Assembly (NCBI GenBank): GCA_001938485.1
Contig: MQRK01227972.1
Span: 1-64,000 of the forward strand
Origin: Girardia tigrina
Taxonomy: Eukaryota
Direction of reading: 5' to 3'
DNA: 64,000 nucleotides
How positions within the stretch are numbered: position 1 is the stretch's first letter; each line of letters opens with the position of its first letter. The notes under the pieces were generated by a model that saw nothing but the letters and a program-made list of their open reading frames with translations, was not told the origin of the DNA and did no database searches. Made by a program: the position numbers and the translations under genes. This document shows positions 2,852-34,274 of the stretch, piece by piece.

Positions 2852-3115
2852 CATAATAATCATAGCATCTTCTATTAATCACCAGTAAAGGATGACCACA
2901 GGTAAAGCAAATTGTATTTTTATCCAGGCCATAATGTACAATCCAGAAACGTGTGGCAATAGAAGAGCTGCTGTTATATGACAAAAACCCTATACCTTTA
3001 ACAAGATCTTGGGTAACCAATTCAATTGGGTCAATTTCACATGTGACATTCATTACTTTAGTTGGAATAAATATTTTTGTATAATCAGGTAAAATTATAA
3101 CTGTTACGCTTTTAT
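2852..3115 (-). CDS. Exon 8 of modular Cys4/Ig-like repeat gene (type B domain)
   Basis: tttAG|AT...TAT G|GTAATT; 264 nt, phase 1-1, open: DKSVTVIILPDYTKIFIPTKVMNVTCEIDP...TICFTCGHPLLVINRRCYDYY. Confidence 0.85.
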
Positions 3116-3711
3116 CTAAATTTAAATTAATAAAGATAGTAAAACTATGTAATATATTTAGTATTGCATCATCAAATATTCATAAAAATATTATATAGAT
3201 TTTATTTACCAAACTGAACTTAATGTAAAACAAAATTAATTTATAATTTTATTAAAATTGTGTTATTTGTCCATAACTGATCCCTTTAGTTCAAACTTTT
3301 CTGATTCAGTTGAATTATAAATGTTAGTACACATATGGGACAATAGATGGAGAAAAGTGCACTCTTCCCACATTTTATGACGGGCTACAACGATCTGAAC
3401 CGATTTAAATACATAATTATTAATTTATTGTTTCTTATTTTAAAAATATTGTCATTTATTGATCAATGTAGATTTCAAAGGGTTAAGCTATCTTTGTCAA
3501 TATACATATGACATTTTTGGTTGAATTCTATTCATTATAGTAAGAAAGGTTGGAGACGAATGAAAACTTGTTTCTACCACAATTTAGTGAAATCCTAAAT
3601 CACCCGCTTTCACCACAATATTAAAACAAGAACTGATTAATTCAGCATGTAACTCATAATTATGTTATTAAATGGAAACATATTTGCATAAAATATTAAG
3701 ATAAATAAATT

Positions 3712-4633
3712 GGATCTACGACGAAACGCCGCGAACAAAAACACCGCGGACAAAAACTCCGAGAATGAAGACGTCGAATTCAATGATTAAATTAATATTA
3801 TTAAATTTAGTAAAACTTTATTTAAATAATATTATTAAAATGAATATTATTAATTGAAAATTTTTCATAAAGGGCTTAAATTAACCTATAAATAAGTTGA
3901 AAATGACTGGATATCGCAAAAGGTTTCAATGTATATTTGTGGTGAAAAACTAAATTATAGACAATTTAAATGGGACCCAATCCGTTTTGTAGATAGAATG
4001 TTAATATTTTGCTTTTAAGAAAATATTTTTAAAAAATCAAAAAATATTTTTAAAAAATAAAAAATCATATAAAAATTTTTTTGATTCTAAATTTTTGAAT
4101 TATTTTTATAATATTGGAAAACACTGTCTTTATTTTTTAAATTTTTAATGTTAAATAAATTAATACTAAAATTTAAAAAAAAATAGTAAAAAATTGAATA
4201 AACATTAAAAATTATTTTTTTAATATTATTTTAAAAATAATTCCAAATCTTAGAATAAAATAATATTTTATATGATTTTTTTATTATTTAAAGATATTTT
4301 CTTAAAAACAGAATATTAACATTCTATTTACAAAACGGCTTGGGCTCCATTTAAATTTTCTATAATTTAGTTTTTCCCACAAATATGCATTGCAACTTTT
4401 TGCGACTTCCAGACATTTTCAGCTTATTTTTAGGTTAATTTAAGCCCATTTTGAAAAATTTTCAATAATTAATATTCATTTGAATAATATTAATATTAAT
4501 TAAATAGTTTTACTAAATTTAATAATTTTAATAATATTAACTTAATCATTGAATTCGACTTTTTCATTCTCGACGTTTTTGTTCGCGGCGTTTTGTCCGT
4601 GGCGTTTTTTTCGCAGTGTTTTGTCGTGATACC
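3712..4633. mobile_element. Mutator-like foldback element (near-complete ~920-bp palindrome) with 9-bp TSD
   Basis: Long inverted arms with subterminal AAAACRCCGCGRAC-like repeats; AAATAAATT at both 3703-3711 and 4634-4642. Confidence 0.88.
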
Positions 4634-4999
4634 AAATAAATTCATTCAATATCTTTTCTTATCGATTTCCCAATCTCGGGGAAATTTGATTGATTTAATT
4701 AACTTTCTCTCAGTCGCATCTAAGTCATCAATTCGAACTAACAAAATTTCTATTGGAAACACAAAACCTTGTCGATAAACCAATAATAAATTTTGGTGAG
4801 TATTAATGATCTTAATATTATTTATGAAGAAACAAAATCATAATTATTATTATTTTGGTGTATGAAACCCTTCGTTTGTTATCTTTTGTAAAAACAACAA
4901 TCAATACGAATGCTATGAAATGACGCTCTAAATTGATTGTAGCAGTCTAAAAATTCAAATAAGCAAAGAATGGTTTAAACGTTGGTCAAATTTGATTTA

Positions 5000-5330
5000 T
5001 CATTCGAAGCCTCGGCATGCCTCAGTCAGGTCTTCGAATAGTGAGGAAGTTCGAGTGAATGCCTTTCTCAATCGGTCTTTATAACCTACTATTGTCTTAT
5101 CTACCGCTTTGTATCGATCTTTCAGATCTCTCTCCAACAAACAAACGACTATTGTCTCTTGTTTGGCCTTCGCTATTNCTGCAAAATTAAAGAATGTTTC
5201 ACATTCTTCAATAAATGTCTCCACATTATCGCCTTTCCTGTACTTTTCAGGTAACAGTTGACCCGTGAGGATATCCATTGCAGCGTTAGTCGCCATGTGA
5301 GATTTGGTTGCAACATCAATAGTAATTATA
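5000..5330 (-). mobile_element. Gypsy gag 5' fragment with LTR end and PBS
   Basis: ...CTCACA|TGGCGACTAAC (LTR end plus PBS); ORF MATN...PEKYRKGDNVETFIEECETFF is gag N-terminal-like. Confidence 0.7.
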
Positions 5331-5496
5331 GCAGAGGACCTTGAAAAACTGTCCTCAGGACTCTATTATTTTCATTAATGTTTATGATGTAAAAATATGT
5401 AAATTATCGTACCAATATTATTAGAAAGTGTCCGATATAATTAAAATTTATTTTAATAAATAAAATTGATCAAAATACATTTCAAAAATTCATTAC

Positions 5497-5760
5497 CATA
5501 ATAATTATAACACCGAAACTTAATGATTAAGAATGAATGACCACAAGAGAAACATATAGTTTCCTTATTCCGCCCATCGTACGGGATCCAAAGAGGGGTC
5601 ACTGCTGAAGAACTACTATTATTTGTAATAAATCTGATATTTTTTACAAGATTCTTTGAAACTATTTCATATGGATCAACTTCACATGTAATATTCATAA
5701 TTCGATTTGGTAAATATATTTTTGTATAATTTGGCTGTATGCGTATTGATATTGGCTTAT
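5497..5760 (-). CDS. Exon 7 of modular Cys4/Ig-like repeat gene (type B domain)
   Basis: ttttAG|AT...TAT G|GTAATG; 264 nt, phase 1-1, open; aligns without gaps to exon 8. Confidence 0.85.
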
Positions 5761-6001
5761 CTAAAAATATATTACACATTAATTAATATTACTTTTCAGA
5801 ATAGAGGTATTTCATAAATAATAATTAATACAGTTAACACTCTATAATTTCACACTTTTGTATGAAAAATACCAAAAGATAAAAATATGAAATTACAAAA
5901 TGTGGATTTATAGAAATTTGATAGTTATGTATTGCATAACAATATACAATCATTACATAACATTATATACAATCATGCTCTTGTATCTTATTGGTTTAGT
6001 A

Positions 6002-7266
6002 TTAGGTTGTTGCAAAAGCAATGTATGTTTTGGACCTTAATTTTAAACAAATGTAACTCAATACACAATAAACTTTATTAATCGAAATAAAAACCATCAG
6101 AATCAATACATTTTTAGCAACTAGAAACAAGTTTATTGATGCCCCTAGTGTAGAACTCCTGAGTTCTGGATGCAATGAAAGCCTTAAAGGCGTCTTTGGT
6201 GTCGTCTTGGTTTTTGAAGCATTTTTTCTAGAGGAAGTTGTCCAGATGCTTGAAAAATTGTAGTCAGTGGGCGAGAGGTCCGGTGAGTAGGGTGGATGAG
6301 GCAGAGTTTCTTAGCCCAATTCGTTTAGCTTTTGTAGGGTTGATTTTGTGATGTGTGACGGAGCGTTGTCGTGGAGGAGAATTAGCCCCTTCATATTGAC
6401 CAATCTTGAGCACATACATCAGAGCTCATGATGCATTTTGTCAATTTGTTGGCAGTAATTCTCTGCGGTCGTCGTTTCACCCGTATTCAGAAAGCTGTGA
6501 TGGATGAGACTGGCTTCAGACCACCAAACAGTCACCATGACCTTGTTTGGAGGGAAGTTTAGTTTCCGAAATTGGTGAGGAGCCTCATCGTGGCCGATTG
6601 TCGTAGAGAATCCACCTCTCATTACATGTTACAATTCGATAGAGAAATGGGTCATTCTTGCTGCTCAGAAGATGCGCGGAAGACACCTCAAAACGACGAT
6701 TTTTTTTGACTTTCGTTCAATTCGTGAGGCACCCATTTATCTAGTTTTTTCAACTTTTCAATTTGCTTCAAAAGCCGAGCGACGGTTGACGGATCAATGT
6801 TAAACTCTTCTGCAAGTGCACGAACGGTTGTGCGTGAATCGGATTCCACCAGCCCCTTCAATTCGTCACTGTCAATCGTACATGGACGGCTACTATGAGG
6901 GTCATCTTCCAGGCTGGTATTGCCAGAGCGAAACTTGATACCAGCACTACATTGTGCATTCATTGACACTTCCCTTGCTTAAAACTTCGTTGATGTTTCG
7001 AGCGGTTTGAGCTGCATTACCCCCAGCTTGAACTTATAGAAATAAATGTTGCGAAAATCACGTTTTGACATATGTAATTAAATTCAAAATTATTAACAAA
7101 AGAAACATTGTAATTAGTTTTAGACAACTATATCTGAAAGAGTATAAATTAAGCTTTTGAACGACTCATAACATAATACATTACATAACATCCTACATAC
7201 TTTAGTCGTATAACAGGGTAAATACAAAAAAAATCATAAACCTGCATTCCTTTTGCAACAACCTAA
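6002..7266 (-). mobile_element. Full-length degenerate mariner transposon
   Basis: TIR TTAGGTTGTTGCAAAAG...CTTTTGCAACAACCTAA with TA TSDs; WVPHEL, HDN and YSPDLSP motifs broken by frameshifts. Confidence 0.93.
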
Positions 7267-7499
7267 TATCAGTCTAAAATTCTCCTTTTACATCTAATCC
7301 CGAAAAATATGCTATTTCACTCATTCTCATTATTCATTCCAAGCACAAACATTAGAGTAGCGATCGTTCGAGACTTTAAACATTAGTGAACTATTTTTCA
7401 TTATGACTTTTTACTAAAATTTATTAACAACAATTAGAAAAAGAATAACAAAAATATTTCAATACTAAAATTTTATGAAACATTATTTTTCCCAGTTTG

Positions 7500-8200
7500 G
7501 TTGTATGTGTAGAAAGCTTTGTAAGATGTTTGCCTTCATACACGCGCTTCCGTTAGCATAAAAATCAATTCCTACATTTTTTGTGTTTATTCCAATAAAA
7601 CATCTTGGTTTTAAAGATTTCCCGATTATTAATGTTGGAAATTTGCTTTTGCCACTATATCAAATAGTTACTCTCTCTTTGTCCTTTTTTCTTCAATGCA
7701 CTTTTGTTTATGCTAGTGTTCTATCAGGTTGCATAAAAACAATGCAGTCTCAACCATGTTATAACGTCATGATGACGATATTTCTCAATTTTTTCTCTCT
7801 ATTTGGGAACACTAAAATCGAAAACGTTTTGATCATCATACCCTAACTCTCCACACAATTTTTTAAGTGATATTCCATGTCGGATTTTGAACGATAACAT
7901 CCACGCTTCAGATAATTTCAAATCAGAATTATTAATTTTCAGCTCCAGTTTCAAAGATACCGCTTCTTGTCGAACCAATTCATCACAGATAAAAATATCT
8001 TCCTGGTTTTTTGTAGAACTCTTCATCAAATTTTGCGTTTTTTTTTAAAAACGTTCACTATTCTTCTTTATAAATTATCTTGAGAAAAAGTCTCTGAATT
8101 TCGTTAATATTTTTGATATTTTACTTCTGTTTTTACTCTTCGCGAAATTGTTTTGTACCCAATCAACCTTTTTTCATGTGTAACACTCTTTTCCTTTTTA
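7500..8200 (-). mobile_element. Degenerate pogo/Tigger transposase fragment
   Basis: CENP-B-type HTH LKLSEAWMLSFKIRHGISLKKLCGE, followed by MQPDRTL and KKDKERVT remnants. Confidence 0.7.
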
Positions 8201-9509
8201 TGACTTATTAACTTAAGTTTCTCATAATTTATCAAAGAAATGTGTTTTATTTAATGTTTAAATTTTCCGATTTGTTAAAATTTTTCACACTGAGAGTGTT
8301 GGGCTATTAGTTTTCCTAAACTGAAAAATAACTTAGATTTTGGAATTATGTTTTGACGATTAATATATTATAGTAAAACAGGCACTAATAAAATTGACTG
8401 ATTAATAATCAGTGACTATCACAGATATAGTTAAATATAGTTTGACATTTTCGTCAATTGATTAGGCTTTAGATTTTCTCGATTGTATTTTCGGCTATGA
8501 TATAAAAGGTACTGAGAAGTTCAATGTGGTAGATCATTTTTCTTGATGGCAGAATTTATCATTGATATCAGTATGATCCATCTAAAATTATTATCTATGA
8601 TAAATTACCTCCACTTAGGGTGGATCGAACAGTATATAACTCAAAAAATTTCTAGTATACCTAACTATTGAACATTTCTCCAAATTGCAATTTTTAAATT
8701 TAATTTTTACAATCATCAAACTTCAATTAACTGGAATATATCATAAGAAGTCTAAGACGAATATCAACAATGTTGATTTCCAAACGATTGTTATTCAATT
8801 AATTTTCAATTGTGATAATAATTAGGTTTACATATGTGATTTATAAATATTATGTTGTAAAAATAGAAATGTGTCAAAAAATTGTGCCAAAGAATCACTG
8901 AAAAATGTGTTTGCGAACAAAGTTTTTGACATCTTGGATGAATTGGTGGCTGTCATCAAAGATCACTGTGCCTTGAAGAACAGCAGCTTCTTAACCTAAG
9001 AAATTGAATTCCTTTCACAGAAAATTTAAAACAGTAATTTAAGTAAGTGTAGAAGATCGTGCGAAAGGGATTCATCAGCCTTAAGCTTTATGGATTCGTA
9101 TATACTACATTTCTATTTTCAGAAAATATGGATTGGAACTCGTTGTGTTACTGTAATTTATATAATCGTAATAGCTATAAACATTTATTTGATTCAATAA
9201 CGTGCTCAAAAATTTTATTTATGTTTATTTATTTTTTAATAAATATGTTTTACTCTTATAATTTTCATGAACAAATTCTAGAACAAACAATTTTAATTCT
9301 TTGGCATCAATAATCTAAAGAATTCGATAACCCTTTAAAAACGTTATCTACTGTCAAATGTGGCATTTGTCGATTTATATTACTTATTCTATTTGAATTA
9401 TACAATTTTTACACAAATTTAAACTTTTACTTTTTTCAAATTTCCTTTAACAATTAATTTTGATTCTATTTTAAAAAACAACTTTTTTATAAACTAAATG
9501 TTTTTGTAT

Positions 9510-10410
9510 GAGATCGTCAAACATGAAAATTTGTAGAACTAAATTTAAAGTTTATTGATAATTTACCATTACAAATATTTATGTCATTCATCAAAGTATG
9601 CGCCCATATTATCGACACACTTTCTTCTTGAACAGCAGCTTCTGGATGATATTTAAATAAAAATTTTTAGGCCAGAATCTATAAATTCCTGGAAAGTCAT
9701 TTTTACGGCATCTTAGGAATTGAATTTTTTTCTTATCAAAAAGTTTTTCAAATTGAGGGAGACCTGATTGTCAGTTGGGACTCGTTCTAGTGGTTTTTTC
9801 ACGGTTTTAAGTGCAGGATGTGGTTTTGCATTGTCGTGGAGCAATATAGGAGTAGACATGTTTACCCAATGCGGCTGTTTTTCTTTGAGTGTCCGCATCA
9901 TATTTTCCAATTGGTTGTAGTAGAAATCTGCTGTAATCGACGATCCATGTTTCATGAATTCATGATGGATTATGAAGTAGCATTATGTGAAAGACAACCA
10001 AACACTCACTATCAGCTTTTTCATGAATTCTGTGCTTTAGACTCGAATGAGGGACCAAAACACACTCTAAAGTTTAGAGTGTGTTTTGGTCCCTCATTCG
10101 TGTCAACCTAGCTAGATGCACGCTTGAAATGATCATATTGCATCGATTTTTCACCAAATTGATGATTTGATTCAAAATTTGATTATATTCATAACGAGAA
10201 AGCATCAACGAGCAAACATTCCAAGGCCTTGTTTCGGCTTTTCATTCAACTTATGTGGGATTCACTTATTCCACCTTTTTACTTTACTAATTTGAGCCAA
10301 GTAATTCAATATTATTTGCTTTGCAACAGCAACGTTAGCGATAAATCATGATCACTTTGGGATGGATCCTACTCCAAAGCTGCCTTCAGTTCTTCATTGT
10401 CTTGGTCGTG
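9510..10410 (-). mobile_element. Degenerate mariner fragment
   Basis: SITADFYYNQL...PILLHDNAKPH; 9510-9615 also recurs inverted at ~33695-33800. Confidence 0.75.
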
Positions 10411-11244: not shown

Positions 11245-11618
11245 GGGAACGAGTGTTATACTTTTCCCACATATTATGCAATCTATGTAGATTACATAAT
11301 TTCGTTTCGAATTAGGGGAATAACTGGCGGAATGGATGAATAAAATTGTTAATTAATTAATAAAAAGTGAAATAATTAATTATTAATTGATTGAAATTCA
11401 ATCAAATCAAATTTAATCATTTATTTGTTAAATAATTTATTTAATAATTCATTTAATAATTAATTTATTCTTTATTTTATTTACTTAAATAAATTAAATT
11501 ATTTAATTAAATTAAATACATTAATTATTTAATGAATGAATGAATAAATCTTAGAATGAATAATGAAATAATCTACACAGATTACATAATATGTGGGGGC
11601 AGTATAACACTCGTTCCC
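11245..11618. mobile_element. MITE with ~45-bp terminal inverted repeats
   Basis: GGGAACGAGTGTTATAC...CCCACATATTATG versus CATAATATGTGGG...GTATAACACTCGTTCCC|TA; AT-rich core. Confidence 0.8.
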
Positions 11619-12139: not shown

Positions 12140-12397
12140 TGTAAAAGTCAAAGCATCCGGTCAACAATTTGTACCACGGGTGGCTACAAGTCAAACATAT
12201 TCTTCCTTGGTTATTCCCATTAACAAAAGCGTGTGAATTATTTCTATAAATGGTTGTAGCATTCAAAAAGAATATTACCGGTAGTTCAGTTATGTTCTTC
12301 AGGAATAAATTTGGATCCAATACACATTCTAGAATAAGGATTTTGTTTGGAAGATAAATGCTTGTATTTGGCATAATGTAAAAATTTGACGGGCCCT
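12140..12397 (-). CDS. Exon 6 of modular Cys4/Ig-like repeat gene (type B domain)
   Basis: ttCAG|AG...TAC A|GTAAGC; 258 nt, phase 1-1, open: GPSNFYIMPNTSIYLPNKILILECVLDP...RICLTCSHPWYKLLTGCFDFY. Confidence 0.85.
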
Positions 12398-12448: not shown

Positions 12449-12688
12449 GATATGGTAATAGACAACGTTTATATTCAACCAATACTTCATGATAGCATGT
12501 TAAACACAATGATCCAACATCTGAACCATTCCAAAATCCAGGAAAAGGATTTTTATTGTCTTTAAAAAGTTGAATATTTGGAAAATATTTCTTTTCTTTT
12601 GGTAAATTTAGATCGCAATGAAAAGTGACATTTTTACGTAATGGATAATGGTTTCCAAAGGGATGAAGTACGAGTAGAGGCCTCGTTT
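12449..12688 (-). CDS. Exon 5 of modular Cys4/Ig-like repeat gene (type A domain)
   Basis: gctaaAG|AA...TAT C|GTTAGT; 240 nt, phase 1-1; 51-nt intron to exon 6; TRPLLVLHPFGNHYPLRKNVTFHCDL...GSLCLTCYHEVLVEYKRCLLPY. The acceptor is less certain than the donor. Confidence 0.8.
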
Positions 12689-13791: not shown

Positions 13792-13802
13792 ATTTAGACT
13801 GA

Positions 13803-16340
13803 TCAATGGAGAGGCAATATACAGTGACAGTTATGTGAGTCTGTCACGTGTAGTTTGTGAGGGGGGTTACAGATGAGTATTGTAAAAGCATTTATAATGG
13901 ATATACTTCCATTAGGGGTTGAAATGATTCTAGGGCTTGATGTTATAGCAAAACACACGATGCTCGGGATAAACCATAATATGATGTTAAAAGTGATCTC
14001 GACTGAAAAATCTTGAGGCGTTATAAAAGAAACAAGCACAGGTCAGAAGAGAAAATTTATAGCTATCGATGATGTCAACTTTCTCGCGGAGTGAAATAGT
14101 CGCCAGTGGAAAGTCAAGTGGAAGTGGAACCCAGATAGTGGTGGAGCAAAATGCCTGGCTCCCCAAAAATTCATGAACGATGGGGATAAAGAAGAATTGG
14201 ACAGAGAAATTCAATAATCGATTGGTGAGGATGAGCTAGTTGCGTATGACGAAAGCAAACACGACTCAATCAGAAGATATCTGCCACTCACGAGTGTGAG
14301 GCAAGAGAAAGGAAGCATTACGAAAATTATTTGATTACCGGGAGATGAAAATATTACTACAATCGTATCCTGTGGGGATAGAATTAGAAAGTGGAGGCAA
14401 TCGGGGTAGAATGATGCAGTTCTTGATCTCAAAAGAGAATACTTACAGATTCACATTGATTAAAGTTTGTGGGTTTATCAAGCGGTAAGGTGGCGAGGTC
14501 AAACGTTCTTACTTACTCGTTTGGGATTTGAATTATGCTCAGCATCAAATATCATGACGAAGATTGTAGAATATATCATCAATTTGAATGATGATCTCAA
14601 ACGGGGTGTATCCAGCTATATTGATGACTTATACCGTGTCGAGACACATGTTACCGTGGCAGAAGTGCAAAGGCATTTCCTTGAGTGTGATTTGGAATCG
14701 AAAGAACCGAAGAAAATTTGGAAAAATGATCCAGCTAGAGTATTAGGTCTGGAATTGATCCTGAGACTAAGAAATTTCGGAGTTAGAAGGCGAAAGGATA
14801 ACAAGGCACAATCTATACAGCTTTGTTGTGGAACTAATAGGTCACCTAACCATTTGTGGACAATTGAGAATCATTTACTCAATGTCACAAAGGATAACAG
14901 CTGCGGAAGAGAAGCACTAGGATGAACCGTTAGGAATCGAATTGTTACAGAAGGTGAGAAGTATTACAAAGTTTTGATAGAGAATGGTGATCCTTGTAAG
15001 GGGAAATGGCCGGTGAAACAGGACTCATCAATGAAGATCTGGACTGATGCGAGCTCAGTGGCAATTGGATACTTGTAGGAAGTGGATAACGAGATCATAA
15101 AAGACGCCGCTTGGTTTAGACCCAAGGACGACCTAAATCACATAAATCGTAGCGAAATGGACGCTGCCATCAAAGGAATAAACTTAGCGATCAAATGAGC
15201 TGCGCGCAGACCTATGTTTATCAAGAATTTATCAAGAATTATGTTTATCAATTGAGCTTGTTGCATCCACAGATAACAAAGCAAACAGATTAACAGGTTT
15301 TCCAAACCAATGGAATGTAAGGTCACAAACAGAAATTCAGAATTTGGAGAAGGAAATCGAACAAATTTTAACCGTTGTCACTTGAGTGAGCAACGCACAT
15401 TGGAATTGTGCAGAGTGAAAATGCTATCCGAAGTATCGAAAGAGAAGGTTGAAGCCTGTATTAAAAACTGTGACTGATGTTGTCATGTGGATCTAGCGAT
15501 AACGCACTTATGGGACACCCGTGGTGTAATGAGCTGTGGGAACGTATTGCAATTGACATATCGCATGTGAATGGACGACCATACCTCACACTGATAGATG
15601 GTTACTATGGATTTACAATGTGGAGGCAGCTCAGAAATTAATCATCCAATGAAGTTGTTTTATACTTAAGACAAATAATCGTAGAATACGGACCGCCGGA
15701 TTCTATCATGTCTGACAATGGAACAGTTTTTCGAGGACGAGATATCAACCAACTTTGCCAAGATTGGGGAGTCAGACAAGAATATTTCTGTGCATAGAGG
15801 CATCAAAGCAATGACGTAATTAAAAGGGTCCACAGAACAATCAAGCAATCGGTGGACAGAACTGGAAGATCCGTTGAAGAGGCCATCCTTTGGTACAATA
15901 ACACTGCTGGGATACACGGAAAAGCACCGTACGAATGGATGTTTGGGTATATATCTCAGAAACACGGAGTCAGCAATGTCAGGACAAGATCTAACTGTGA
16001 ACCAAAATAGTTTGAGCGAGAGAACGACTATAATGACATTGCTCGGAATCCACTAGTTGTCAGCGACAGATTTTATTTGAAGTCTGACTGTAAGAGGTGT
16101 AACAAAGAATGGAGTCGGCTTCATTTAGTAATAAGGATCATCTCAAGAGTTTCGGTTGAAATAAAGGCGTGGCGAGGCATGTTTTGCTTTTTGCTTTTTG
16201 CTACATAGAAGAAAACATAGCCTGGAGACAAAACGTCAGATTGCTTAATGGATAGAGAGTTCACAATAGAGAACTATCCAGATGAGGTACGCGATTAAGG
16301 CCAGCACGAGTCGACAAGACTACAACACTCCAGGAGGACT
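13803..16340 (+). mobile_element. Degenerate Gypsy pol (protease-RT-RNase H-integrase)
   Basis: MILGLD, YQAVRWRGQTFLLTRLGF..SYIDD, WTDAS, HINRSEMDA and YGPPDSIMSDNGTVF motifs, with many stops. Confidence 0.85.
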
Positions 16341-17018
16341 GGTTGAAATAATTTACATCTTGATCGAACTTAAGCAGAATTAATTAAATAAATATGTTTT
16401 TTAAAATAAATTAAATAAAGTAATTAATTAGAAATTTTAGTTAAGTTAAAAATTTAAGTAAAATCAAAATTTAAATTTCTATTGTAAATACTTCCAAGAA
16501 AACACAATNNNNNNNNNNNNNNNNNNNNNNNNNNNNNNNNNNNNNNNNNNNNNNNNNNNNNNNNNNNNNNNNNNNNNNNNNNNNNNNNNNNNNNNNNNNN
16601 NNNNNNNNNNNNNNNNNNNNNNNNNNNNNNNNNNNNNNNNNNNNNNNNNNNNNNNNNNNNNNNNNNNNNNNNNNNNNNNNNNNNNNNNNNNNNNNNNNNN
16701 NNNNNNNNNNNNNNNNNNNNNNNNNNNNNNNNNNNNNNNNNNNNNNNNNNNNNNNNNNNNNNNNNNNNNNNNNNNNNNNNNNNNNNNNNNNNNNNNNNNN
16801 NNNNNNNNNNNNNNNNNNNNNNNNNNNNNNNNNNNNNNNNNNNNNNNNNNNNNNNNNNNNNNNNNNNNNNNNNNNNNNNNNNNNNNNNNNNNNNNNNNNN
16901 NNNNNNNNNNNNNNNNNNNNNNNNNNNNNNNNNNNNNNNNNNNNNNNNNNNNNNNNNNNNNNNNNNNNNNNNNNNNNNNNNNNNNNNNNNNNNNNNNNNN
17001 NNNNNNNNNNNNNNNNNN

Positions 17019-20480: not shown

Positions 20481-20717
20481 TTAACATTATGAAACATCGA
20501 GATGAAGAAGAAATAATAATGGTCGTACAAAAAGCACATATGGTACGATTGCTTGTATTATATTTTCCACCAACAAATACCGTTGTCTTATTTACTTGAA
20601 GTAATTCTGTAGTGTTCAGCAACAATTTTAAATCTCTTCCATCTGGATAACATTGAATCTCAGTTTCTATGTCAAAGAAATATGCTTTACTAAATACCGG
20701 TTTTAATTTTTGATATG
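20481..20717 (-). CDS. Exon 4 of modular Cys4/Ig-like repeat gene (type C domain); not in ORF track
   Basis: ttttTAG|CA...TTA A|GTTAGA; 237 nt, phase 1-1, open by manual translation: YQKLKPVFSKAYFFDIETEIQCYPDG...VGGKYNTSNRTICAFCTTIIISSSSRCFIML. Confidence 0.85.
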
Positions 20718-22172: not shown

Positions 22173-24900
22173 CAGTGGAAACCACTTCAGATGAAATCGC
22201 TTAAGACGAAATACCGGTTACGACGAAATAAAATACATGTCCCACAAAAAAGTAAAACCGTTTAAGACGAATTCTAGAATTTTTTACGATAAATCAATGA
22301 AGAACTATGAAGAACATTCATAGTTTGCAATGTCCACTCGATTTTATTTCCCAAAACACATAAGATATCTGAGACAAGTTCCAGAATGACACTCATTTTT
22401 AATTTATTTTAAATGCTCTGGAAATAGTCTATAATGTTTGTTTGGATAGAATTTTGGATCACTGATTTCTGTGCATAGTTCTCAATCACACCCAGAGCAT
22501 GTAGCGCAGTGATATCGCCATCTTGGCACTGAAGGAAGATGCAAATTCCATTCAGAAAGTTGATGACATCTTTTGCATAAGGCAATACAGGCACAGGGGA
22601 ATCATCTTCAGAACCCCCCGATCTATCATCTTCTTTCTTTTGATGCACCTCAGCAGCAATTTCAGAATGGCTTAGCTATCTTGTTACTGCTACGGCATCA
22701 TCTGCATGAAGGTAAACTTCAGGGTCAACAACGTCTGGGATGTTCATGAAATGGCGGAGACGGTCGAATATATTGTCCATTGAACAGGCATCCACTTGTT
22801 TAAGAGAGTTGTCCACTGGTGGGGCATTCTTGACGATTCCTGAGTGACGCCAACAGTTGGAGATGGTTTCCTCGGGGACATCATTCCAAGCCGCGCTCAA
22901 CATGTCCATGGCTTCTCGAAAATCTATCTCAGAATGCATTCCACTCTCATATGCTGCTAGAGTTCGTTTGAGCAAGCGTGATTGATATCGTCGCTTGGTT
23001 GCCTGTATAATACCTTAGTCAAAAAGCTGAAGCACAGCAGTTGTGTTTGGCGATAGATACTGCACCTTGACATTTGTCAGGTCATGCACATTTTTATGTG
23101 CGGAGCAATTGTCAATCAGCAAGAGGATATGTCGACCTAGATTGCGAATGCTCTTATCCACTTTTCGGATCCATTCTTTCCAGAGGTCACCCGTCAACCA
23201 TGCTTTCTTATAGTAGTAGACTAGGATATGCTTTATACCCCGGAAACACCTGGGATTTGTCGCTTTTCCTAGTACAAGTGGTTTCAGCTTACTTGTCCCC
23301 GTCATGTTGGTTGCAAGGAGAACAATTATTCTGTCTTTGGCTTGCTTTCCACCAGTGCAAGGTTTTCCTTTAAAATCAAGTGTTCGATCTGAAAGCATGC
23401 GCCAGAACAAGCCACTTTCATCAGCATTAAAAATGTACTTCTCCTCATAGGGTGATAGTAGCTGAGGCAGGACTGTCAATCACCAGTTATCAACCGCTTC
23501 AGTATCGACATCAGCGGCTTCGCTACATACAGCTCGCAGACGAATTCCATGTCGATCCTTCCAATGGCCAAGCCATCCAATACTGGGGTTGAAGTCTGGT
23601 ATGCCCAGCTCAATGCATAAAACTTTTGCTTTCTCCATTAAAAGAGGAACATCAACTGCAAGTGACTGGGATCTCACTTGCGTAAACCACCGAAGGAGGG
23701 CTTCATCCACGTCCGTATGCGTTGATGTGCGCTGTCGTTTACATGATCCACTTTTTCCGCTCTCCACAGCCTTGCAGATTACAGCATTATTCTTTATTAT
23801 GGTAGAGAGTGTGCTGGGCGGAATTCCGAATTCAAAAGCAATTTCCATCTTCTTTCTTCCTTTATTCACCTCTGCCAAGATCTTTAACCTCTTTTCAAGA
23901 GATATGGCGTGTTTCTTTGACATGATGAAAGCAGTCGTTTACAGTCCTTTGCGGGTAAGAATCTGGAAACGGCATTTAAGAGCAAAAATCCATAGTAAAA
24001 TTGAAAATCTAAAAATAAATATCCAATCTTACTTCTTTTTTAAGCATATAAATTGAAAAAATAATGATTAATTTTGAGATTTTTTTGGTATCAAATTGCA
24101 GTTAACTGCTGATTCAGTGCAGTTAACTGCAAGCCAATGTATCAAAGAATTGTAAAAATGCTAAACAACAAATACAACGCACACATGTGCACATTTCAGA
24201 CGATTATCCTCAACCAATTGACATACTGTACAGTAATCTGCTGTACGTTATATACTATGAAAAGAGGAAGAGGAAGGGGAGAGAGACATTGTGATGATGG
24301 CGTTATCTATAAATGCTTCAGTGCCCCTTGAAAAAATGATCATACATACACGCTGACCAACATAGCTCTGACACATTGTGAGGGTGCCATTCACCATATA
24401 CATACAGTACCATATATATGTCCCCGGGAAGGGGCTACATAAATTTACAAAGCGTGGTGCTGACCAGTTAGATCAGCTTCCGTAGATCAATGTGCATATT
24501 ACAATGCACTACACGCACACTGCGTCAAAATTTTTATGCAGGTGTGACATAAAACCAAGTGTGATTCAAACCAGCCGTCTGATTTCCTCTCTTTCTCTCT
24601 CTCTGTGCATACAGTACAGTAGCTTACACTGTATGTGTTTGAGTAGCCCCCGGATGCTCACGGTCTGTGCATACGTGTTTTAATGTTTGTGTGCACACGC
24701 GTGAACCAACATAGGGTAGTGAAAGGGCGTGCGTGCCATTGATAACTGCATGTATAGAGGAAACCGACAGACTGGCAGTGAAATTAACCTATACCACATG
24801 TTTGTAAATGTGGTAGAGTTAAATAATCACAAGAACAAGAAATCCGCTTAAGACGAATATCGGTTAAGACGAAATTTTCTGCTGGCAAACACGATTTTGT
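22173..24900 (-). mobile_element. Tigger (pogo) transposon with near-complete disrupted transposase (23923 to 22409)
   Basis: TA|CAGTGGAAACC terminus; subterminal TTAAGACGAA repeats at both ends; HTH domains, FNADESGLFW, LLLIDNCSAH and PNTTAVLQLFD motifs; right end replaced by a mariner. Confidence 0.93.
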
Positions 24901-25930: not shown

Positions 25931-26069
25931 AATTTAAAATATAAGTATCATTGGGATGATTTTTGTGACTATATATGTTTTTAAGTTAATGTAAAATCCC
26001 ATAGTCAGCATAAAATACGTTAAACATAATAAATATTTAGCAAAATAGGAATTGATTTGTAAAACCTAC

Positions 26070-26330
26070 ATCTAGGATATAAACATTGTCGATATTCATT
26101 TATATATATGATCTGACAAGTGGGACATTCGTGGATACATTGGAAACATATCTGTCCAATATTAGAACCATTTAAAATTCCAGAATGGTGGGTACGATTG
26201 AATTTATAAAACATTATATTTTTATAATAATTAATAATCTTATCAGGTATAAGATCACAATATAAATTCACAGTTTTTCCAATCGGATATAAACTTCCTG
26301 GCAAATTGAATATAAATTGCGGAAAGGTAA
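26070..26330 (-). CDS. Exon 3 of modular Cys4/Ig-like repeat gene (type A domain with extra CPTC)
   Basis: tttcttAG|TT...AGA T|GTAGGT; 261 nt, phase 1-1, open; homologous to exon 5 (YP..K.V...CDL...NGS..G..C..C.HE...EY..CL.P). Confidence 0.85.
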
Positions 26331-27235
26331 CTAAGAAAAAATATAATTATTTTTTATTGTTTATTAATTGCTTTTATTACAGAATACAATAAAAATGTAC
26401 AAAATATACATAATGTAATATAATTTTCTTTATTACCTTTGACCTTTATGAAATGCTATTTGAATATTATGTTACCGCCAGCTTTATATAATAATTGTAA
26501 CAAGAACTTTAAGTTAAATTATTTTACACAACAAATATTGCAAATAAATGATTTTTAAAATATTTATAGTTATTCATACATACTTTGTAAAAGTTTCAAT
26601 GAAATCATAGTAATTGGTGAGGAGAATCCTGGTTTAAGGGTTCTCCGGTCGTGTCCATTTTATAAGTTTTCTCTCAAAATCTTTTGCAATTGCTTTTTAA
26701 AATTTTTAATCTGTACATTTGTTTTATCCTTTAACTTTCTTCATTTCAAGATGCTTTATTTTTTTATCAAAAGATTCAATTTCATTTATTGAAGCTTTAA
26801 TGCCGTCAGACATTTTTTTTGATTTCTAAATTTAAAAATAAAACGATTTAAGTATTCACTTTTATTTTTAAATTAAAATTTCTGATATAAATGTCATGTA
26901 CACATTTTATTTTTTACAAATGGCTCTTAAAAATTTTACTTTATTTTACACTCGCTTGCAATTAACAGTAAAATACCAGCCTTCGATAATAAAATCCAAA
27001 TGAAAATTGGCAATCTAAAAATAAATAGCCAATTAAAATTCATAAAATACGTTTAAACAGATGATAAAAATAACTCCCCGCATTTAACAATAGTGTAAAT
27101 TATAGAAAGAAATGTTCTACCCCTCATACACACAAAACACACATACAATACATACATACAGAGACAAAAACACATCTCATACATACCTCATACACACCTG
27201 ATTTGCCAGCGTTTAAGAGTGAACAGACTTTAAGA

Positions 27236-28783
27236 GTAAAAAAAGTGAAATTTCAAAAATGATTCAAGATTACAATTTATTGCCCGTTAGCAGTGCCGAT
27301 GACACTGAAATAATGTACTTTATCGTCAATCATGTTATTTTATTAAATAATCATAGTAGCGATTCCGAAGACAGCCAAAAAACAGAACCATGCCGAATAA
27401 AAAAACTCGAAAATCGTAATTTTTATTTTCAATATCAAATTAAAATAATAAAATTATTCCAGAATAAGTCTAATCGACAAAGAAAGACTCATCAGAGCTT
27501 ACAATATGTCAGAGGACTATTTGACTCTGGCAAGGCAGCTCGATATATCCCTATCAGCTGACAAGAACATCGTATACAAATATCAAAAATGCGGTCTCAT
27601 TATTGTTTGGTAAACATGGAGGCCACAAGAAATCACTTATTACCAAAGAAATCGGCGAGACGATCATTCGGTATGTAAAGGAGAAATCGCAATCGACGTT
27701 GGGAGAGATGAAACGCGGTATATTGAGGAAAACAACGAGATCAATATATCGGAATCTACAATTTCCCGCTTCCTCACCAATAAATTAATAACCGTTAAGA
27801 TCAGGGGCTCCGTCCAAGAACGAAATTCAGATCGAGTGAAAGACCTCCGATTTCAATATGCCTGCCGATTTATAAAGGAAGATTGGTGAATGAGTCAATG
27901 TGTTTACATTAACGAAATCGGATTCAATCTATGGACCAGCCGCCAATTCAGTCGTTCAAAGAGAGGCACTCCGGTGAATATTGTCATTCCAACAAACAGG
28001 GAAAAATATGTCCCTCATTATGGTAATATACAGGAAGGGTATCTTGCTATTCAAATTATACTGTGGCAGTGTGGATCATGCCAAATATCAATCGTTCATA
28101 AACGATTTATCGAGAATTCTGCCAGGGACACTGCATTATTTAATCCAGGATAATGCGTGAATCCATTTCAATACTGCCTCCAATCATGAAATTGTCAATT
28201 TGCCGCAATATTCTCCAATCCTCAATCCAATTGAGGCGTTTTTCGCAAAAATGAAGCAGGAAGTCAGGAAAGCAATAACAAACCATCCAAGCATCCTGAC
28301 ACTAAGCCACCACCAAAGGCTGGTAGTTTTGCAGGAGAAAATCGAGGCTGTGGCATGCAAATGAAAGCAACAAAGATATGATGAATTACTTTCATCATCC
28401 GAAGAAATTCTTTGTTGACTGCATTCTGAAATCAGTGTGAGTCCTTGTGGCGCTCCACCGAGGGCAGATCTAACTGGCAACGGCGATCCGTTTGCCAAAG
28501 GTGAGCCAGTGGGTACTCCATCGACATGGATCTGACCGGTATTGGCGGTCCATTTGACGGAGGTGGGCTAGTAAGCACTCCACCGGCGGCGAATCTGACC
28601 GGCATCGGCGGTTGGTTTGCCGATAGTGTGCCCGGTGCCAACTGATCAGTATCGGGAACTGCATTTCGGAGGATTGCCGTTGTGTCTGTTGGTTCTGAAA
28701 CCATTTTACTGATGCAGTCGCCGTAAAAAAATGAAATAACAAGATCGAGGTGAAATCATTATCTTTTGAAAATTTAACTTTAC
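27236..28783 (+). mobile_element. Degenerate IS630/Tc1-like (DDE_3-type) transposon
   Basis: CVYINEIGFNLW..SRSKRGTP, IQDNA*IH and LPQYSPILNPIEAFFAKMK motifs at ~27500-28400. The boundaries rest on a weak inverted repeat (27236-27266 vs 28751-28783). Confidence 0.75.
28453..28640. repeat. Three GC-rich tandem repeats of 62-63 bp
   Basis: Units start ctccaYcg at 28453, 28516 and 28578; each contains atct.ac.gg....ggcg. Confidence 0.8.
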
Positions 28784-28869
28784 ATGTCGTAATTTACATT
28801 AAAATAATTAATTCAAACAAACGATTTTAATTTTTTTACAACTCAATAATTGTTTCATAAAGTCAATTT

Positions 28870-29448
28870 TTATAAAAATATACGCAAAAAGAAACCGCGG
28901 AGTAACGCAACAATGTACTTGATTAAATGCACAGAAAATATAGCGTTAAACCAAGTTCGCGCAGATGGACTTAACAAGTTTTCTATAGCCTTTTAGATTT
29001 AGCTGCTATAAGTGCTTGGATTCTGTATAAAAAGACGGATTCAAGTAAGTATTTCACGAAAAGAAATTATTTTTCCAAATGGCTGAAGAGCTAAGAAGAT
29101 ATTTTATAGAAGAAGTCGAGAACAGTTCAATATCAATAACTGAAATTCAAACTACTGAGGTACGAAAGAATTGTTAAGTTCAGCAATCATGCAAAAGATA
29201 TAGATGTACAAACATTTGTGCTAAATACAATAGAAATGTTTGCGGAAAAATGTGTTGCAAAATCAGTTATAATTAAAAAAATGTTATAATTAAAAAGTTA
29301 AAAAATGTTTTCCATGAATTTCTTGATCATAAAAATTTATTTAACTTGTTTTTTTAACTTTCTTAGCTTAAAACGTCGATTTTCTTGTATGAGTCAAATT
29401 GGCTCATTTCAGTAAATATATAACCAACATCCGTAAATCAAGTCTTAA
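28870..29448 (+). mobile_element. piggyBac transposase 3' remnant
   Basis: VFYSLLDLAAISAWILYK...FQMAEELR plus a C-terminal Cys-rich region; ends at a TTAA. Confidence 0.75.
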
Positions 29449-29553
29449 CGGAACATTATTTTTTATAAATTTAAAATTTAATTTTAAATCATATAATAAC
29501 GTTAATTTTAAATTATAATAAAATAAATGCCTAAATATTTTTAAGAATCTCAC

Positions 29554-29796
29554 CAAGCATTATATAACATTGCATCCTGCTAGTAGAAGTATTAGTAAAA
29601 CAGTAACCGCATATCGTTTTGTTACTTCTATTATGTCTCCCTCCGATAGATGCATTTGTTTTATTATGAAAAAAAATTTCAGATGTATTAAGGTATAACG
29701 AAACATTGAGATTTTTGGGAAGGAAAAAACAATATATTATACTTTCTCTGTCATAATAATATACAGCCGCATCAGTCGGTAGTATGTTTACAGATC
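29554..29796 (-). CDS. Exon 2 of modular Cys4/Ig-like repeat gene (type C domain); not in ORF track
   Basis: ttttCAG|GA...CTT G|GTGAGA; 243 nt, phase 1-1, open: SVNILPTDAAVYYYDRESIIYCFFLP...IGGRHNRSNKTICGYCFTNTSTSRMQCYIML; 7 N-X-S/T sequons. Confidence 0.85.
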
Positions 29797-29989
29797 CTGA
29801 AAAAATAATGTTTAATTAACTTTTTAGAAAAATCAAAATTATGTAAATTTATTATAAAATTTTAGCAGTGTATCACAAATATTTTGAATAAAAAAATTGA
29901 AGTAAATTATTTTTAAATTACAAACAGTTATAAAATTTTACATAAATTCTCCTTTTTTATAAAAACATTTTTGTTATTTAATTAGAAGT

Positions 29990-30406
29990 CTTTGATTTTC
30001 AGAATGAAATCTATAGAATCTGATTGAGCACTTCAAGAAAAGAAAAATGGTGTATCACTTGCTATATTTTGATACGCGAATACAGAGAAAACGACATTTT
30101 TCTACAAATGAAAATATTTGGTGATATATCTCTTTAGATTTATCGAATTTTTATATAGATTATTGTCTTTCCTCGCTGTGTCTTCAGTTTCTTTGTTTTG
30201 TTTTTTGTAAAATAAGAGCGCAATGCAATTTGTCATTGAAATATTCAGTTGTGATAAAATTTGATTATTTCAGCAAAAAAATTTCACAGAAAAATCATTT
30301 TTTTCAGATTTTTCGAAAAATTTAGCACTTTGATTTTCAGAATGAAATCTATAAAATCTGATTGAGCACGTCAAGACAAGAAAAATGGTGTATCACTTGC
30401 TATATT
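29990..30406. repeat. ~80-bp direct repeat pair
   Basis: ctttgattttcagaatgaaatctata...ggtgtatcacttgctatatt at ~29990 and ~30328. Confidence 0.85.
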
Positions 30407-31699
30407 AGTTGGCTGATCAAAATTTAAATAGTTTTAAAAAATATTTGGAATTGAAATCAAATAGAAAATTTTAAAAATTAATTAGAATGAAAACTTAAAT
30501 ATTTTAAATTTGAATTCGAAAATATTCTTTATAAATTGATTTGAATTAAAATTTATTTTGGTAGAAAAATGAATTGATCAAAACAGATAACAGATGAAAC
30601 AGTATTTTTAAAATAATAAATTTATTTAAAATTTGAATTCTATTAAAAAATTTTATTAATATTAGTAAAAATTTATTTTTCAAATTTTAAATTAAATTAA
30701 ATTTCGAAAATAGTAAAAATATTATAAAACTAGAAAAAGACACGTCATATATGACGGGTGAGCTGAATTTTCTTTTTTGAAAGTTTCTGTTTTAATTTTT
30801 AAATCATAATTATGATAATTTATTATTTATTGCTTCGAATTTTGTGTTGATTTAACAATAGTGCCTTTTTAACATTGGATTTTGATTTGACCACAATTTT
30901 AAATAAATGAAAAATTATAGGAAAATAGAGATTGGCGAATTGATTATTAATTACGAAAATAGTTAGAAATTTTATTTGAAAATTGTTTATAATAAATGTA
31001 TAAATTGAGTAAAAAATGATTTCTGAAATTTATGTTACAAAAAGCTCTCAAAAAGTCTATCCAACCTTTCTTAATCTTGAAGTATAATTTCAAAATAAAG
31101 AAGATTAATTTAAAAGATTCACTAAACAATGGACCTGTAAAGCACCATACAAGAAAACAAATGATCTCAATCCCCGTCGAATATTACACAGACAACATGA
31201 GTTTTATAAAAAAATGTTCATTCATTTTGCAGTGAAGAACCAAGGAAACTACAGAGTACTACTAAAATTTTTTCTTGAAAGAATTCTGAGGTTTTTATGC
31301 AGATAGAAGCCTTATTTTAAATGAGCCTTCATAAACAGGGGGACTGTGCTGATTTCTTGAGTTCGAATCTGAATCTATCCCACTTTTAAACAATTTAATC
31401 AAATCAAAGTCGATATTTTCGGTGTATTTCTTGTACGAATTGTTCGCTAAAAACCAATTGAGAGGGGGAAATGACCATCTGGCTAAGGGTAGCATTTTAA
31501 AATATGTTTCGGTGTTGATCACGATATAATTCCGTAACTATTTGGTCCTGCTCAAAAATTTGGAACTGAATAATTCGGTTGCGATCAATGCTTGGATAGC
31601 CAGGTCGTTAGATGGCCAAACAGTTGCTTTTTTCCTACGGGAAAGAAAAAAGGATATAAAAAGACCTTAAAATCAATCATTTTGAAAAATTTTCTGATG

Positions 31700-32870
31700 A
31701 AAGAGATTTAACTAAATAAACTATAAATGTTAAAGAATCCAAAAATGTAATTATTAGGAATAATAACCGAGAATACTGTAACACACAAAAAGTTTATTTT
31801 CAAAACACTGTTTAATTGATAATATTTAAACAACATATTTATCAAAAAAGTATATATTAAATTTTTTAAATAATCAAAATATCTAATATCCAACACTCCC
31901 ACCAGATTCGTCCACAGAAGAATCTGAATCCACAATGTAATCATTTAGATAAGACGATCTTCGTCTTTCTCTATTAGGCCTACTGTTCAATGATTGTTCC
32001 TCTTGTGTTTGATTGTCTGGTAGTGTGCAGTTTCCTCCATATTCATATAGTATGACTTGGAATTTTCAACCAAGTTAGACTGTCTAGGTCGAATGTCTGC
32101 GATATGTCTTGGACCGCAAAATCCGTTGCAATTTACTACATATGTCCTTTGATCTATTCTTTTCACGACAACACCCTTGACCCATTGCTGTGAACATGGT
32201 GGACTGTTTTCCGGTTTTACCCACACTAATTGATTCTCAATATAATCTGGATTTCAACAAAACGGTTTCTTTTCACTTCCTTCAATTATATCTAACCCTA
32301 TGGGCAAATAGCTATACAGCACCGAGCTTGGTGTTTCTTTTCCTTCAGATGGCATGTTATTATACCACCATAAAGCTTCCAAAATGCTGATATTTGATCT
32401 GGACGCAATTCTTTTGATTGTTTTGTGATTCCTTTCTATTATTCCGTTGCAGGTAGGTCAATTGATGACACGATACATGACTCGAACGTTCCACTTTTCC
32501 ATTAGCTTGTTGAATTCTACCGAATGAAAGGTGGTATAATTATCGATAATTAGTTCCTTGGGAGACCTGCGTTCACAGAACAAACTTGAGAATTCTGAGA
32601 CAATTGACTTGACGTCTTCAGCCTTTATTAATTTCCATATCGCAAAGCGAGAAGGACCACAATCGATTACACTTAAAAATTTTTGTTGATTGTACTTTGT
32701 AACATCCACAGCAAGTCTTGTCCAGTTTTAATTGACGCTCAGCCTACCTGTTTTCCATTTTACGGGTGCCGGATCGATGGTTTGACATTTTTGACATCTT
32801 GAAATAAGATCCTTGATATCCGCGTTTGACACACCTATTCATTGCTTCGCACATAGATATTGCATTCTGT
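31700..32870 (-). mobile_element. Gypsy integrase, PPT and start of 3' LTR (second family)
   Basis: RLAVDVTK..FLSVIDCGPSRFAIW..PKELIIDN and NGIIERNHKTIKR motifs; ggtgggag|TGTTGG at ~31894. Confidence 0.85.
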
Positions 32871-33612
32871 TTGCGCCTGGTAATACGCGATACTTTAACT
32901 GATGGAGATAGACTTAAAAGAATAAGGGAAATATATGCAGATAAGATAGATGAATCATTAATGAAATTACTAATAGAATATAAAACGATATTTATGGCGG
33001 AAAAATGGGATATAGGGAAGACTACACTAACTAAGCATAAAATTGAAACGCAAGGAGAACCAATATTGGTAAAACCATACCGACAACCAAAACACTTTGA
33101 GGAAAAACTAGATGATATTATCTAGAATTACGAGGAAAATGATATCATTGAAAAATGCAGTTCGCCGTGGAATTTTCCGTAGTATGCGTATGAAAAAAAG
33201 ACACATGGATATTCAAGTATGCGTTGATTTTCGACAATTAAATAAAGTCACAATCAGACCAGCATTTCCAATGCCAAATGTAGAAGAAATGCTAAATACA
33301 TTAAATGGAGCGAAATACTTCAGAACGATCGACTTGGGGAGTGCATATCATCAAGTTGAATTGGAGAACGATTCAAAATTAAAAACTGCATTTTCGACAA
33401 AGAACGGCCAATATTGTTTTAAAAGAATGCCATTCGGAATTGCGACATTTCAAGAACTAATGACAAGAGTGTTAGGATAATTAAACTGGAAAGAAGCAGT
33501 TGTATACCTGGACGATATTCTAATCTTCACAAAAGACAAAGAAGAACATTTTAGACGAGTCGAACACGTATTTCAAAAGATTAAAGAATCGGGCCTTCGA
33601 ATAAACCCTGAA
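32871..33612 (+). mobile_element. Gypsy RT fragment, same family as 58742-63310
   Basis: KWDIGKT..PYRQP..CVDFRQLNK..RMPFG..VVYLDDILIF. Confidence 0.9.
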
Positions 33613-34072
33613 CTATGATCTAACAATCTATTCTATTTAACAATTTTCTATTTAAATGGTCTCAACAAGCTGTGTTCAAATGGCAAAAGTATATCGATAA
33701 TATGGGTGTATACTTTGATGAATGACATAAATATTTATACTGGTAAATTATCAATTAATTTGGACTTTACTTCTACAAATTTCATACTTGACGACCTAAT
33801 AGTTGCTAAACATATAACTGATTAATGACTTAGATAGTAAATCTTTTAAATGATTCATGTTTTGACATTGGAAGTATAGTGCAAAATTGCAGTTCAATCA
33901 GATCTTTGCAACTGGTCAGAAAATTAACCCCAAGATTGATTTCAGGCAGGCAAGTAGAAATGAAACCAAGTTTTAAAAACGTATTGAAAAAGCATAGCTT
34001 TTATACGTCAAAAAATAAATAAAATAATTTAAGATCAAGGATATAAAATATTTTAAGTCTGTCAAATATAAC

Positions 34073-34274
34073 CTTGTTTATGTTTTATAACTAAGCAACT
34101 GCTACATGACAATGTTGTCTTCCCATCTCTCGTAACACATTTACATAAACAACCGTTGACAATTTTGTCTGTACATTGGTTTGTAATTTCCTTTCCGGAA
34201 GACTGATCATACAAATAAATCCACAGTGTAATGAAATTTACATAACGAAATAAATATATATTTATTATAATCAT
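34073..34274 (-). CDS. Putative exon 1 of modular repeat gene: signal peptide plus Cys-rich cap
   Basis: ATG at 34274; hydrophobic N-terminus, then CTDKIVNGCLCKCVTRDGKTTLSCSSC; phase-1 donor CAA G|GTTATA is compatible with exon 2. Linkage to exon 2 is inferred. Confidence 0.6.

Follow-up and report, generated by a model that had tools for sequence, protein, structure and literature searches.

Tryptophan-less Ig-like domain exons in a Girardia tigrina contig: the 5′ part of a gene from a family of predicted extracellular proteins

The window (the whole 64,000-nt stretch of DNA analysed) carries a series of short open exons on its minus strand, separated by transposon-filled introns, and the question is whether these exons belong to one functional gene and what kind of protein that gene would encode. 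A first-pass annotation had proposed a leader and seven single-domain exons coding for divergent Ig-like modules of a secreted or surface protein.

A leader and seven phase 1-1 exons in the window

A blind scan found all seven of the claimed exons (7/7), AG/GT bounded, phase 1-1 and stop-free. The exon sizes and the junction codons (GGA, GTT, TCA, AAA, CAG, AAT and GAT) agree with those first given, the leader and seven exons together are open over 1,969 nt (656 codons, where ~656 had been estimated), and 25 N-X-S/T sequons were counted, more than 20 having been claimed. Seven such exons are present in the window and none in each of 25 Markov shuffles. A profile made without any window exon ranks the seven first of 1,065 window ORFs.

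The leader exon (34073..34274, -) includes a signal-peptide-like N-terminus and a six-Cys vWC/TILa-like cap, and ends in phase 1. Exon 1 (29554..29796, -; 243 nt) encodes an Ig-like domain of the N-terminal subtype B with 7 sequons, and exon 3 (20481..20717, -; 237 nt), also of subtype B, shares 38% identity with it. Exons 2 (26070..26330, -; 261 nt) and 4 (12449..12688, -; 240 nt) encode sister Ig-like domains of subtype C, exon 2 having an additional Cys pair in the FG loop. Exon 5 (12140..12397, -; 258 nt), separated from exon 4 by a 51-nt intron, predicts a divergent Ig-like domain of the main type. The Ig-like domains of exons 6 (5497..5760, -; 264 nt) and 7 (2852..3115, -; 264 nt) are also main type, and that of exon 6 belongs to a recent clade of 24 members.

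An assembly gap of 510 N (16509..17018) lies amid repeat-like DNA in the 7.8-kb intron that separates exon 3 from exon 4, so that no exon or frame spans it. The linkage of exons 1-3 with exons 4-7 across this gap is the scaffold's only; indirect support comes from the shared strand, from the duplication pattern that pairs exon 1 with exon 3 and exon 2 with exon 4, and from the equal subtype order of the paralogues. An exon may be concealed inside the gap. A second leader was sought upstream of exon 3 and was not found.

Exon 7 ends in a phase-1 GT donor resembling that of an internal exon; the 3′ end of the gene is very probably missing here, and the gene probably runs on beyond the end of the contig. 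A candidate last exon (2733..2777, -), which would add ~14 codons and a stop beyond a 74-nt intron, is unsupported; it is common to no paralogue and is followed by a high-copy repeat. Reads on positions 2400-6400, from runs that are contigs and may be DNA, cover mostly intronic repeats, with no joint across the intron at 3116-5496. The seven exons are the front (5′) part of a real gene.

It is very doubtful that the window copy is silent or decaying, or that fragments of two genes have been joined at the gap. Such an explanation would account for the lack of spliced reads in these contig-type, possibly DNA, runs, for the transposon-filled introns and for the unread link across the gap. However, 8/8 exons are intact with canonical sites, exons 6 and 7 differ by a dN of 0.33 against a dS of about 1.9, no leader precedes exon 3, and the subtype order over the gap is that of the paralogues.

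A family of about ten genes under purifying selection

The scan for paralogues that had been proposed recovered at least 150 exon matches in the genome, in roughly ten genes, with an in-frame stop in just one of the matches. All 58 distinct exons that were fetched have AG/GT boundaries and phase 1-1 and keep the frame, and arrays reach at least 18 domains, one contig alone having 18 domain exons. The seven exons first described stand but the lone seven-domain gene does not, the window holding instead the 5′ part of one among ~10 genes with longer arrays.

Paralogous domains are 15-74% identical to that of exon 6, and the 24 related main-type domains form a lineage-specific recent sub-clade. 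Neighbouring exons are often joined by ordinary introns of 46-65 nt. The leader lies immediately ahead of a type-B exon at 11 other places in the genome and in one unrelated environmental assembly, the intron between them being ~50 nt in the paralogues, and the N-terminal order is constant (leader, B, then C or main type). Identical exon structure was seen in eight environmental contigs from unrelated environmental assemblies. No convincing or conserved C-terminal, transmembrane or GPI exon was found in the fetched DNA, within 1.3-7 kb downstream of eight arrays. The family is animal and lineage-restricted, probably belonging to triclad flatworms (planarians).

Purifying selection acts across the family, with a median dN/dS of 0.20 and no exon pair above 1. 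The 24-member clade has a mean dS of about 1.3. Only one codon column among the variable positions has pN clearly above pS, the variable positions are scattered and do not cluster in loops, and positive selection was detected at no site, so that the recognition role suggested earlier gains no support. The domain exons are unlikely to derive from transposons, a reading rejected on the conserved splice sites and phase and the dN/dS of 0.2.

None of 55 domains matches the Pfam profiles ig, I-set, V-set, Ig_2, Ig_3 or C2-set at E values up to 1. Pfam and PDB sequence searches gave noise only and no named-protein match was found, in keeping with the first-pass statement that the family was not recognised. 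Searches of the Atlas gave weak Ig-cluster leads only (0.83-0.91), and metagenome locus scans found no family locus. Word-indexed protein searches returned no match, a blank that is uninformative because relatives do exist. One candidate relative, P0012, was rejected as an XIAP false positive. No account of the family was found in the literature searched, most subscription papers being outside its scope, and the family is apparently without prior description.

Predicted fold of the domains and composition of the leader

AlphaFold2 models of two divergent subtypes, exon 6 (pLDDT 88.2) and exon 1 (pLDDT 89.9), both predict a two-sheet Ig beta-sandwich, and their top structural matches are nearly all Ig or Ig-like, lending support to the proposed Ig-like fold. 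The best matches are to domain 1 of ICAM and VCAM proteins, with moderate Z scores of 7.5-8.6 that indicate fold and say nothing on function. For the exon 6 model these are ICAM-3 (Z 8.6, rmsd 2.5, 78 aligned), ICAM-2 (Z 8.5), ICAM-5 (Z 8.2) and VCAM-1 (Z 7.4); Ig-domain matches of the exon 1 model reach Z 7.6.

The domains were compared with a list of IgSF I-set/V-frame features (PMC9546547). Cys25 and Cys72 occur in 58/58 domains, on predicted strands 21-28 and 68-73, the predicted positions of the B-F pin disulfide. As had been claimed, the core Trp is missing on strand C (0/58); position 43 is Phe in 47/58 domains. The tyrosine corner (DxGxYxC) is also absent, with Phe two residues ahead of Cys72 in 48/58 and no Tyr, and the DxG motif is displaced by two residues. 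The A'B-turn Gly is not conserved, position 18 being Asn in 34/58 domains and Gly in 6/58. Asp64 (33/58) is a candidate half of an Arg-Asp salt bridge. About three N-glycan sites are predicted per domain.

Cys1 and Cys3 are invariant, and Cys2 and Cys4 are jointly absent in three domains (two genomic exons and P0010). This pairwise loss supports the earlier proposal of a second disulfide that joins the first CxxC cysteine to the final Cys, predicted here as Cys69-Cys83 (Cys2-Cys4) between strands F and G. A zinc-binding role for the CxxC was rejected, since the protein has a predicted signal peptide and sequons and the two Cys are lost as a pair.

Domain 1 of ICAM-1/2/3/5, VCAM-1 and MAdCAM-1 (atypical I-set) is short like the domains of the family, with identities of 8-13%, and it too lacks the core Trp and has two disulfides. 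In ICAM and VCAM domain 1, the second of these joins the BC and FG loops through two CxxxC motifs, whereas the BC-loop Cys is not matched in the family, which has Pro29 there and whose extra pair, Cys69-Cys83, would link F and G via CxxC. ICAM, VCAM and MAdCAM-1 proteins are vertebrate integrin ligands, and the likeness to ICAM/VCAM domain 1 is probably convergent.

The leader holds a six-Cys module of its own, a feature additional to the original account. A paralogue leader matches TILa in Pfam with an E value of 0.0024 and 18.4 bits, below the curated cut-off of 27; neither the window leader nor the L054 leader matches a TILa/vWC clan profile. The likeness to vWC clan modules (TILa, VWC) is weak, the cap having just six Cys in ~45 residues, and the cap relates to VWC clusters in the Atlas at 0.76-0.78. 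The window copy has its Trp-bearing segment deleted. The leader appears to comprise a signal peptide and a vWC/TILa-like cap, consistent with the extracellular location that had been suggested.

Possible roles of the encoded proteins

We favour, by somewhat better than even chances, a functional gene, represented here by its 5′ part, from a lineage-restricted, probably triclad, family encoding a giant extracellular adhesion, matrix or coat glycoprotein. Each gene would specify a signal peptide, the small six-Cys cap and a distinct first Ig-like domain of type B, followed by a long series of Ig-like domains that lack the Trp. Each of these would have its own phase 1-1 exon, and there would be between 10 and at least 18 of them, perhaps ~30. 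Each domain would have a B-F disulfide (Cys1-Cys3), an F-G disulfide (Cys2-Cys4) and approximately three N-glycans. Once the exons are spliced and the protein exported, the repeats may build a long, stiff, glycan-covered rod, lengthened by exon duplication and exposing an N-terminal tip that would bind or self-associate. By analogy with hemicentin or ICAM/CEACAM ectodomains, it could act in adhesion, in the matrix or as a surface or mucus coat. Hemicentin is a giant extracellular protein forming a long tandem-Ig rod, with an N-terminal VWA domain and canonical Ig domains detectable by Pfam. The family lacks the VWA domain, the leader with its cap being followed directly by a type-B exon in the paralogues, and has no Pfam Ig match. 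In planarians, hmcn-1 is a matrix glycoprotein (PMC6453901).

Membrane-anchored immune or self/non-self receptors, their diverse domains forming a germline binding repertoire, are an unlikely alternative for which Alr of Hydractinia offers the logic. Alr is a lineage-restricted invertebrate family whose exons each encode one domain and whose unusual Ig domains were identified largely by structure prediction (PMC9546547), and resembles the family in all three respects. Alr domains are without the B-F disulfide, and the proteins combine only 1-3 Ig domains with an Fn3-like fold, a transmembrane helix and tails of the ITAM/ITIM type (PMC9546547); no sequence relationship to the family was found. 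The ~10 strongly diverged paralogues and nearest folds of ICAM, CEACAM and NCAM type would suit receptors, as would a C-terminal anchor beyond the DNA covered, but selection is purifying throughout with scattered variability, arrays of 10-18 or more domains are stalk-like, and no convincing transmembrane exon follows the eight arrays within 1.3-7 kb. An adhesion or surface-coat protein is most likely, rather than an immune receptor.

Less probable still is a gamete, egg-capsule or reproductive-gland coat (VERL- or zonadhesin-like), in which tandem repeats would serve species-specific gamete adhesion. TILa occurs in zonadhesin, and the TILa-like cap, the heavy predicted glycosylation, the long arrays and the lineage-specific sub-clade would fit such a coat. 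The repeats are not homogenised, however, as the mean dS within that clade indicates, none of the structural matches listed is a ZP-N fold, and the 1-4/2-3 Cys pairing of ZP-N is unlike the 1-3/2-4 pairing predicted here. We give little credence to Dscam-like cassettes, where each mRNA would pick one or a few interchangeable exons and each leader would yield many isoforms. The symmetric phase means that any subset of exons preserves the frame, and a few leaders stand against many domain exons, but in the 250-nt flanks no 9-mer is shared more often than in controls and no 12-mers are complementary in the docking/selector manner, many neighbours are joined by ordinary short introns, and the N-terminal order is fixed. 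A similarly small chance attaches to the ~10 loci being a flatworm-specific recognition system, independent of Dscam, in which combinatorially spliced double-disulfide Trp-less Ig exons provide an isoform repertoire for immunity or self-recognition.

Well over 100 Ig-like exons in ~10 genes escape Pfam and are absent from named protein databases. The family would for this reason be missed wherever planarian matrix, adhesion and immune genes are listed by domain. It represents an Ig variant with no Trp and a predicted extra F-G disulfide, and if laboratory planarians hold orthologues, its function would be directly testable by RNAi and single-cell atlases.

Organization of the gene

A blind scan of the window for stop-free, phase 1-1 segments with AG/GT bounds and a CxxC recovered all seven minus-strand exons proposed in the first-pass annotation, namely exons 1 (29554-29796) and 3 (20481-20717) of subtype B, exons 2 (26070-26330) and 4 (12449-12688) of subtype C, and exons 5 (12140-12397), 6 (5497-5760) and 7 (2852-3115). 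None of 25 shuffles contained a single instance of this pattern, against 7 in the window, and the seven exons take the top ranks among 1,065 window ORFs with a profile built solely from other contigs. Computed junction codons and lengths reproduced the junction codons and 656-codon total given earlier, and 25 sequons were counted where more than 20 had been claimed. The putative leader exon (34073-34274) is supported by paralogue leaders that share 46-47% identity, the same start and most cysteines. Its translation has a hydrophobic N-terminus followed by a six-Cys module that may be vWC/TILa-like; weak matches link paralogue leaders to TILa (E 0.0024, under the cut-off) and to VWC clusters.

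The 7,792 nt intron between exons 3 and 4 contains a 510-N assembly gap (16509-17018) flanked on both sides by repeat-like DNA and, because the gap falls within this intron, no reading frame spans it. Indirect evidence suggests that exons 3 and 4 are linked across it: the B/C subtype order, the order in paralogues (contig C239057 opens with B, C, B; four more contigs have a B exon followed by C), and the finding of no second leader upstream of exon 3. A further exon may be hidden within the gap.

The window includes decayed Ty3/gypsy-like LTR retroelements at 47900-53400 and 59100-63000 (one copy each, with gag zinc knuckle, RT and integrase), and introns of the gene contain related remnants at 31900-33600 and 14400-16000. 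A pogo/Tigger-like transposase broken only by a few stops (22400-23940, minus strand) sits in the intron that separates exons 2 and 3, and a mariner-like remnant is located at 54500-55400 (plus strand). A GC-rich (~53%) coding-like island (36450-36820), 2 kb upstream of the leader, has stops in every minus-strand frame and no Pfam match.

Predicted domain fold and proposed disulfides

AlphaFold2 models of exon 6 (pLDDT 88.2) and exon 1 (pLDDT 89.9) are both beta-sandwiches closest to Ig domains, in line with the Ig-like fold proposed earlier, and profile-profile comparison finds the two modelled subtypes homologous (probability 97.5%). The exon 6 model is nearest to domain 1 of ICAM-3, ICAM-2 and ICAM-5 (Z 8.6, 8.5 and 8.2), with MDGA1 and VCAM-1 next, and the exon 1 model to CEACAM1, ICAM-5, CSF1R and VCAM-1 (Z 7.5-7.6). 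Foldseek returned no match at E <=0.001, nearly all rows being Ig domains. For these predicted structures, the scores show an Ig-like fold, not ICAM family membership.

The B- and F-strand cysteines are kept in 58/58 domains. The core Trp, correctly described as missing, is absent among these 58, with Phe there in 47. Checked against a V-frame residue list (PMC9546547), the 58 domains lack the tyrosine corner and mostly the A'B glycine; in several sequence tests the family does not qualify as canonical I-set. Cys25 and Cys72 never vary. Cys69 and Cys83 are lost as a pair in two exons of the genome and in the library protein P0010, and none of the 58 lacks just one of them. The exon 6 model places Cys69 and Cys83 in register on the two strands (68-73 and 79-86) of the predicted F-G hairpin. 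Co-loss and model register both argue for the second disulfide previously suggested between the first CxxC Cys and the last Cys. A third Cys pair is present in some domains, located in the FG loop in exon 2 (26070-26330) and in the CD region in one paralogue (L035:5262-5522).

The family in genome and environmental assemblies

Domain profiles were run against 1,428,149,015 bases in 255,254 contigs (~30% GC), for a genome given as 1.40-1.88 Gb (10.64898/2025.12.11.693146). At least 150 matches were obtained from up to 466 candidates, and stops are present in only one of the best 150. Since many genome places are allelic or assembly duplicates, ~100 distinct exons are estimated; all 58 that could be read have AG/GT bounds, phase 1-1 and an open frame. 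C239057 carries 18 domain exons, running to the contig end, and C227973 one leader and 10 domain exons. An environmental leader used as query found 11 genome places, each ~50-90 nt upstream of a type-B exon, and counts of distinct leader and type-B variants point to a family of roughly ten genes.

A 1.8-billion-protein library yielded 13 relatives, all single-exon fragments from short AT-rich environmental-assembly contigs, with phase 1-1 exons and ~50-nt introns as in the genome. Ten were looked up and gave no named protein apart from one XIAP match, a false positive. On environmental contig L054 a leader is accompanied by a type-B exon. L052 and L053 have repeating ends, each ~1.3-kb unit holding two domain exons, a pattern that points to tandem arrays of near-identical units in another species. 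An aldo/keto-reductase-like C-terminus at L056:59-220 (Pfam E 0.009) ends ~45 nt before a same-strand domain exon, either a nested gene or a chimeric contig. The leader Cys module recurs nearly unchanged, each copy split by the same frameshift, on ~22 genome contigs (e.g. C215498:23725-23897 and C172996:2555-2726), where no Ig exon was found; a mobile element possibly captured and spread this fragment.

Gene length and possible role

Exon 7 stops 2.85 kb short of the contig end, with a normal phase-1 donor. The sole nearby candidate last exon has ~14 codons, is followed by a high-copy repeat and is common to no paralogue; the available DNA yielded no terminal or transmembrane exon that is conserved. 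Exons 6 and 7 share one clade (support 88) with the exons, 22 in all, of five contigs that showed neither a leader nor a type-B exon. If these exons continue the window gene, it would have ~29 domains and some 2,600 residues. One C125655 exon is identical to the last exon of C243943 and another has the same score as the first exon of C252740. These matches imply an uninterrupted run of at least 10 exons of exon 6/7 type.

We lean towards a role in adhesion, matrix or coat. The protein would be exported through a signal peptide, and its tandem domains, each with two disulfides and ~3 glycans, would form a long protease-resistant rod. An Ig domain is ~4 nm long, and 20-30 domains would span ~100 nm. 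Binding or self-association would most likely take place at a tip formed by the fixed N-terminal cap and type-B domain, and symmetric exons would leave rod length free to evolve.

Comparison of 24 related exons gives a median dN/dS of 0.20, no pair exceeds 1, and variable positions are scattered. An immune or self-recognition receptor is unlikely, and a reproductive coat somewhat less likely still. Dscam-like cassettes are very improbable, and flanking introns have no common motif above controls and no docking-type complementarity. A dead or mis-joined gene is slightly less probable still. Public runs on window positions 2400-6400 gave mainly intronic-repeat matches, no exon 6-7 joint and no usable RNA evidence in any; the missing joint does not speak against splicing. 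On the preferred reading, the protein may behave like a tandem-Ig adhesion or matrix protein. Its fold and general design are of known kinds; the gene family is real, under selection, apparently undescribed so far, and has a distinct Ig variant.
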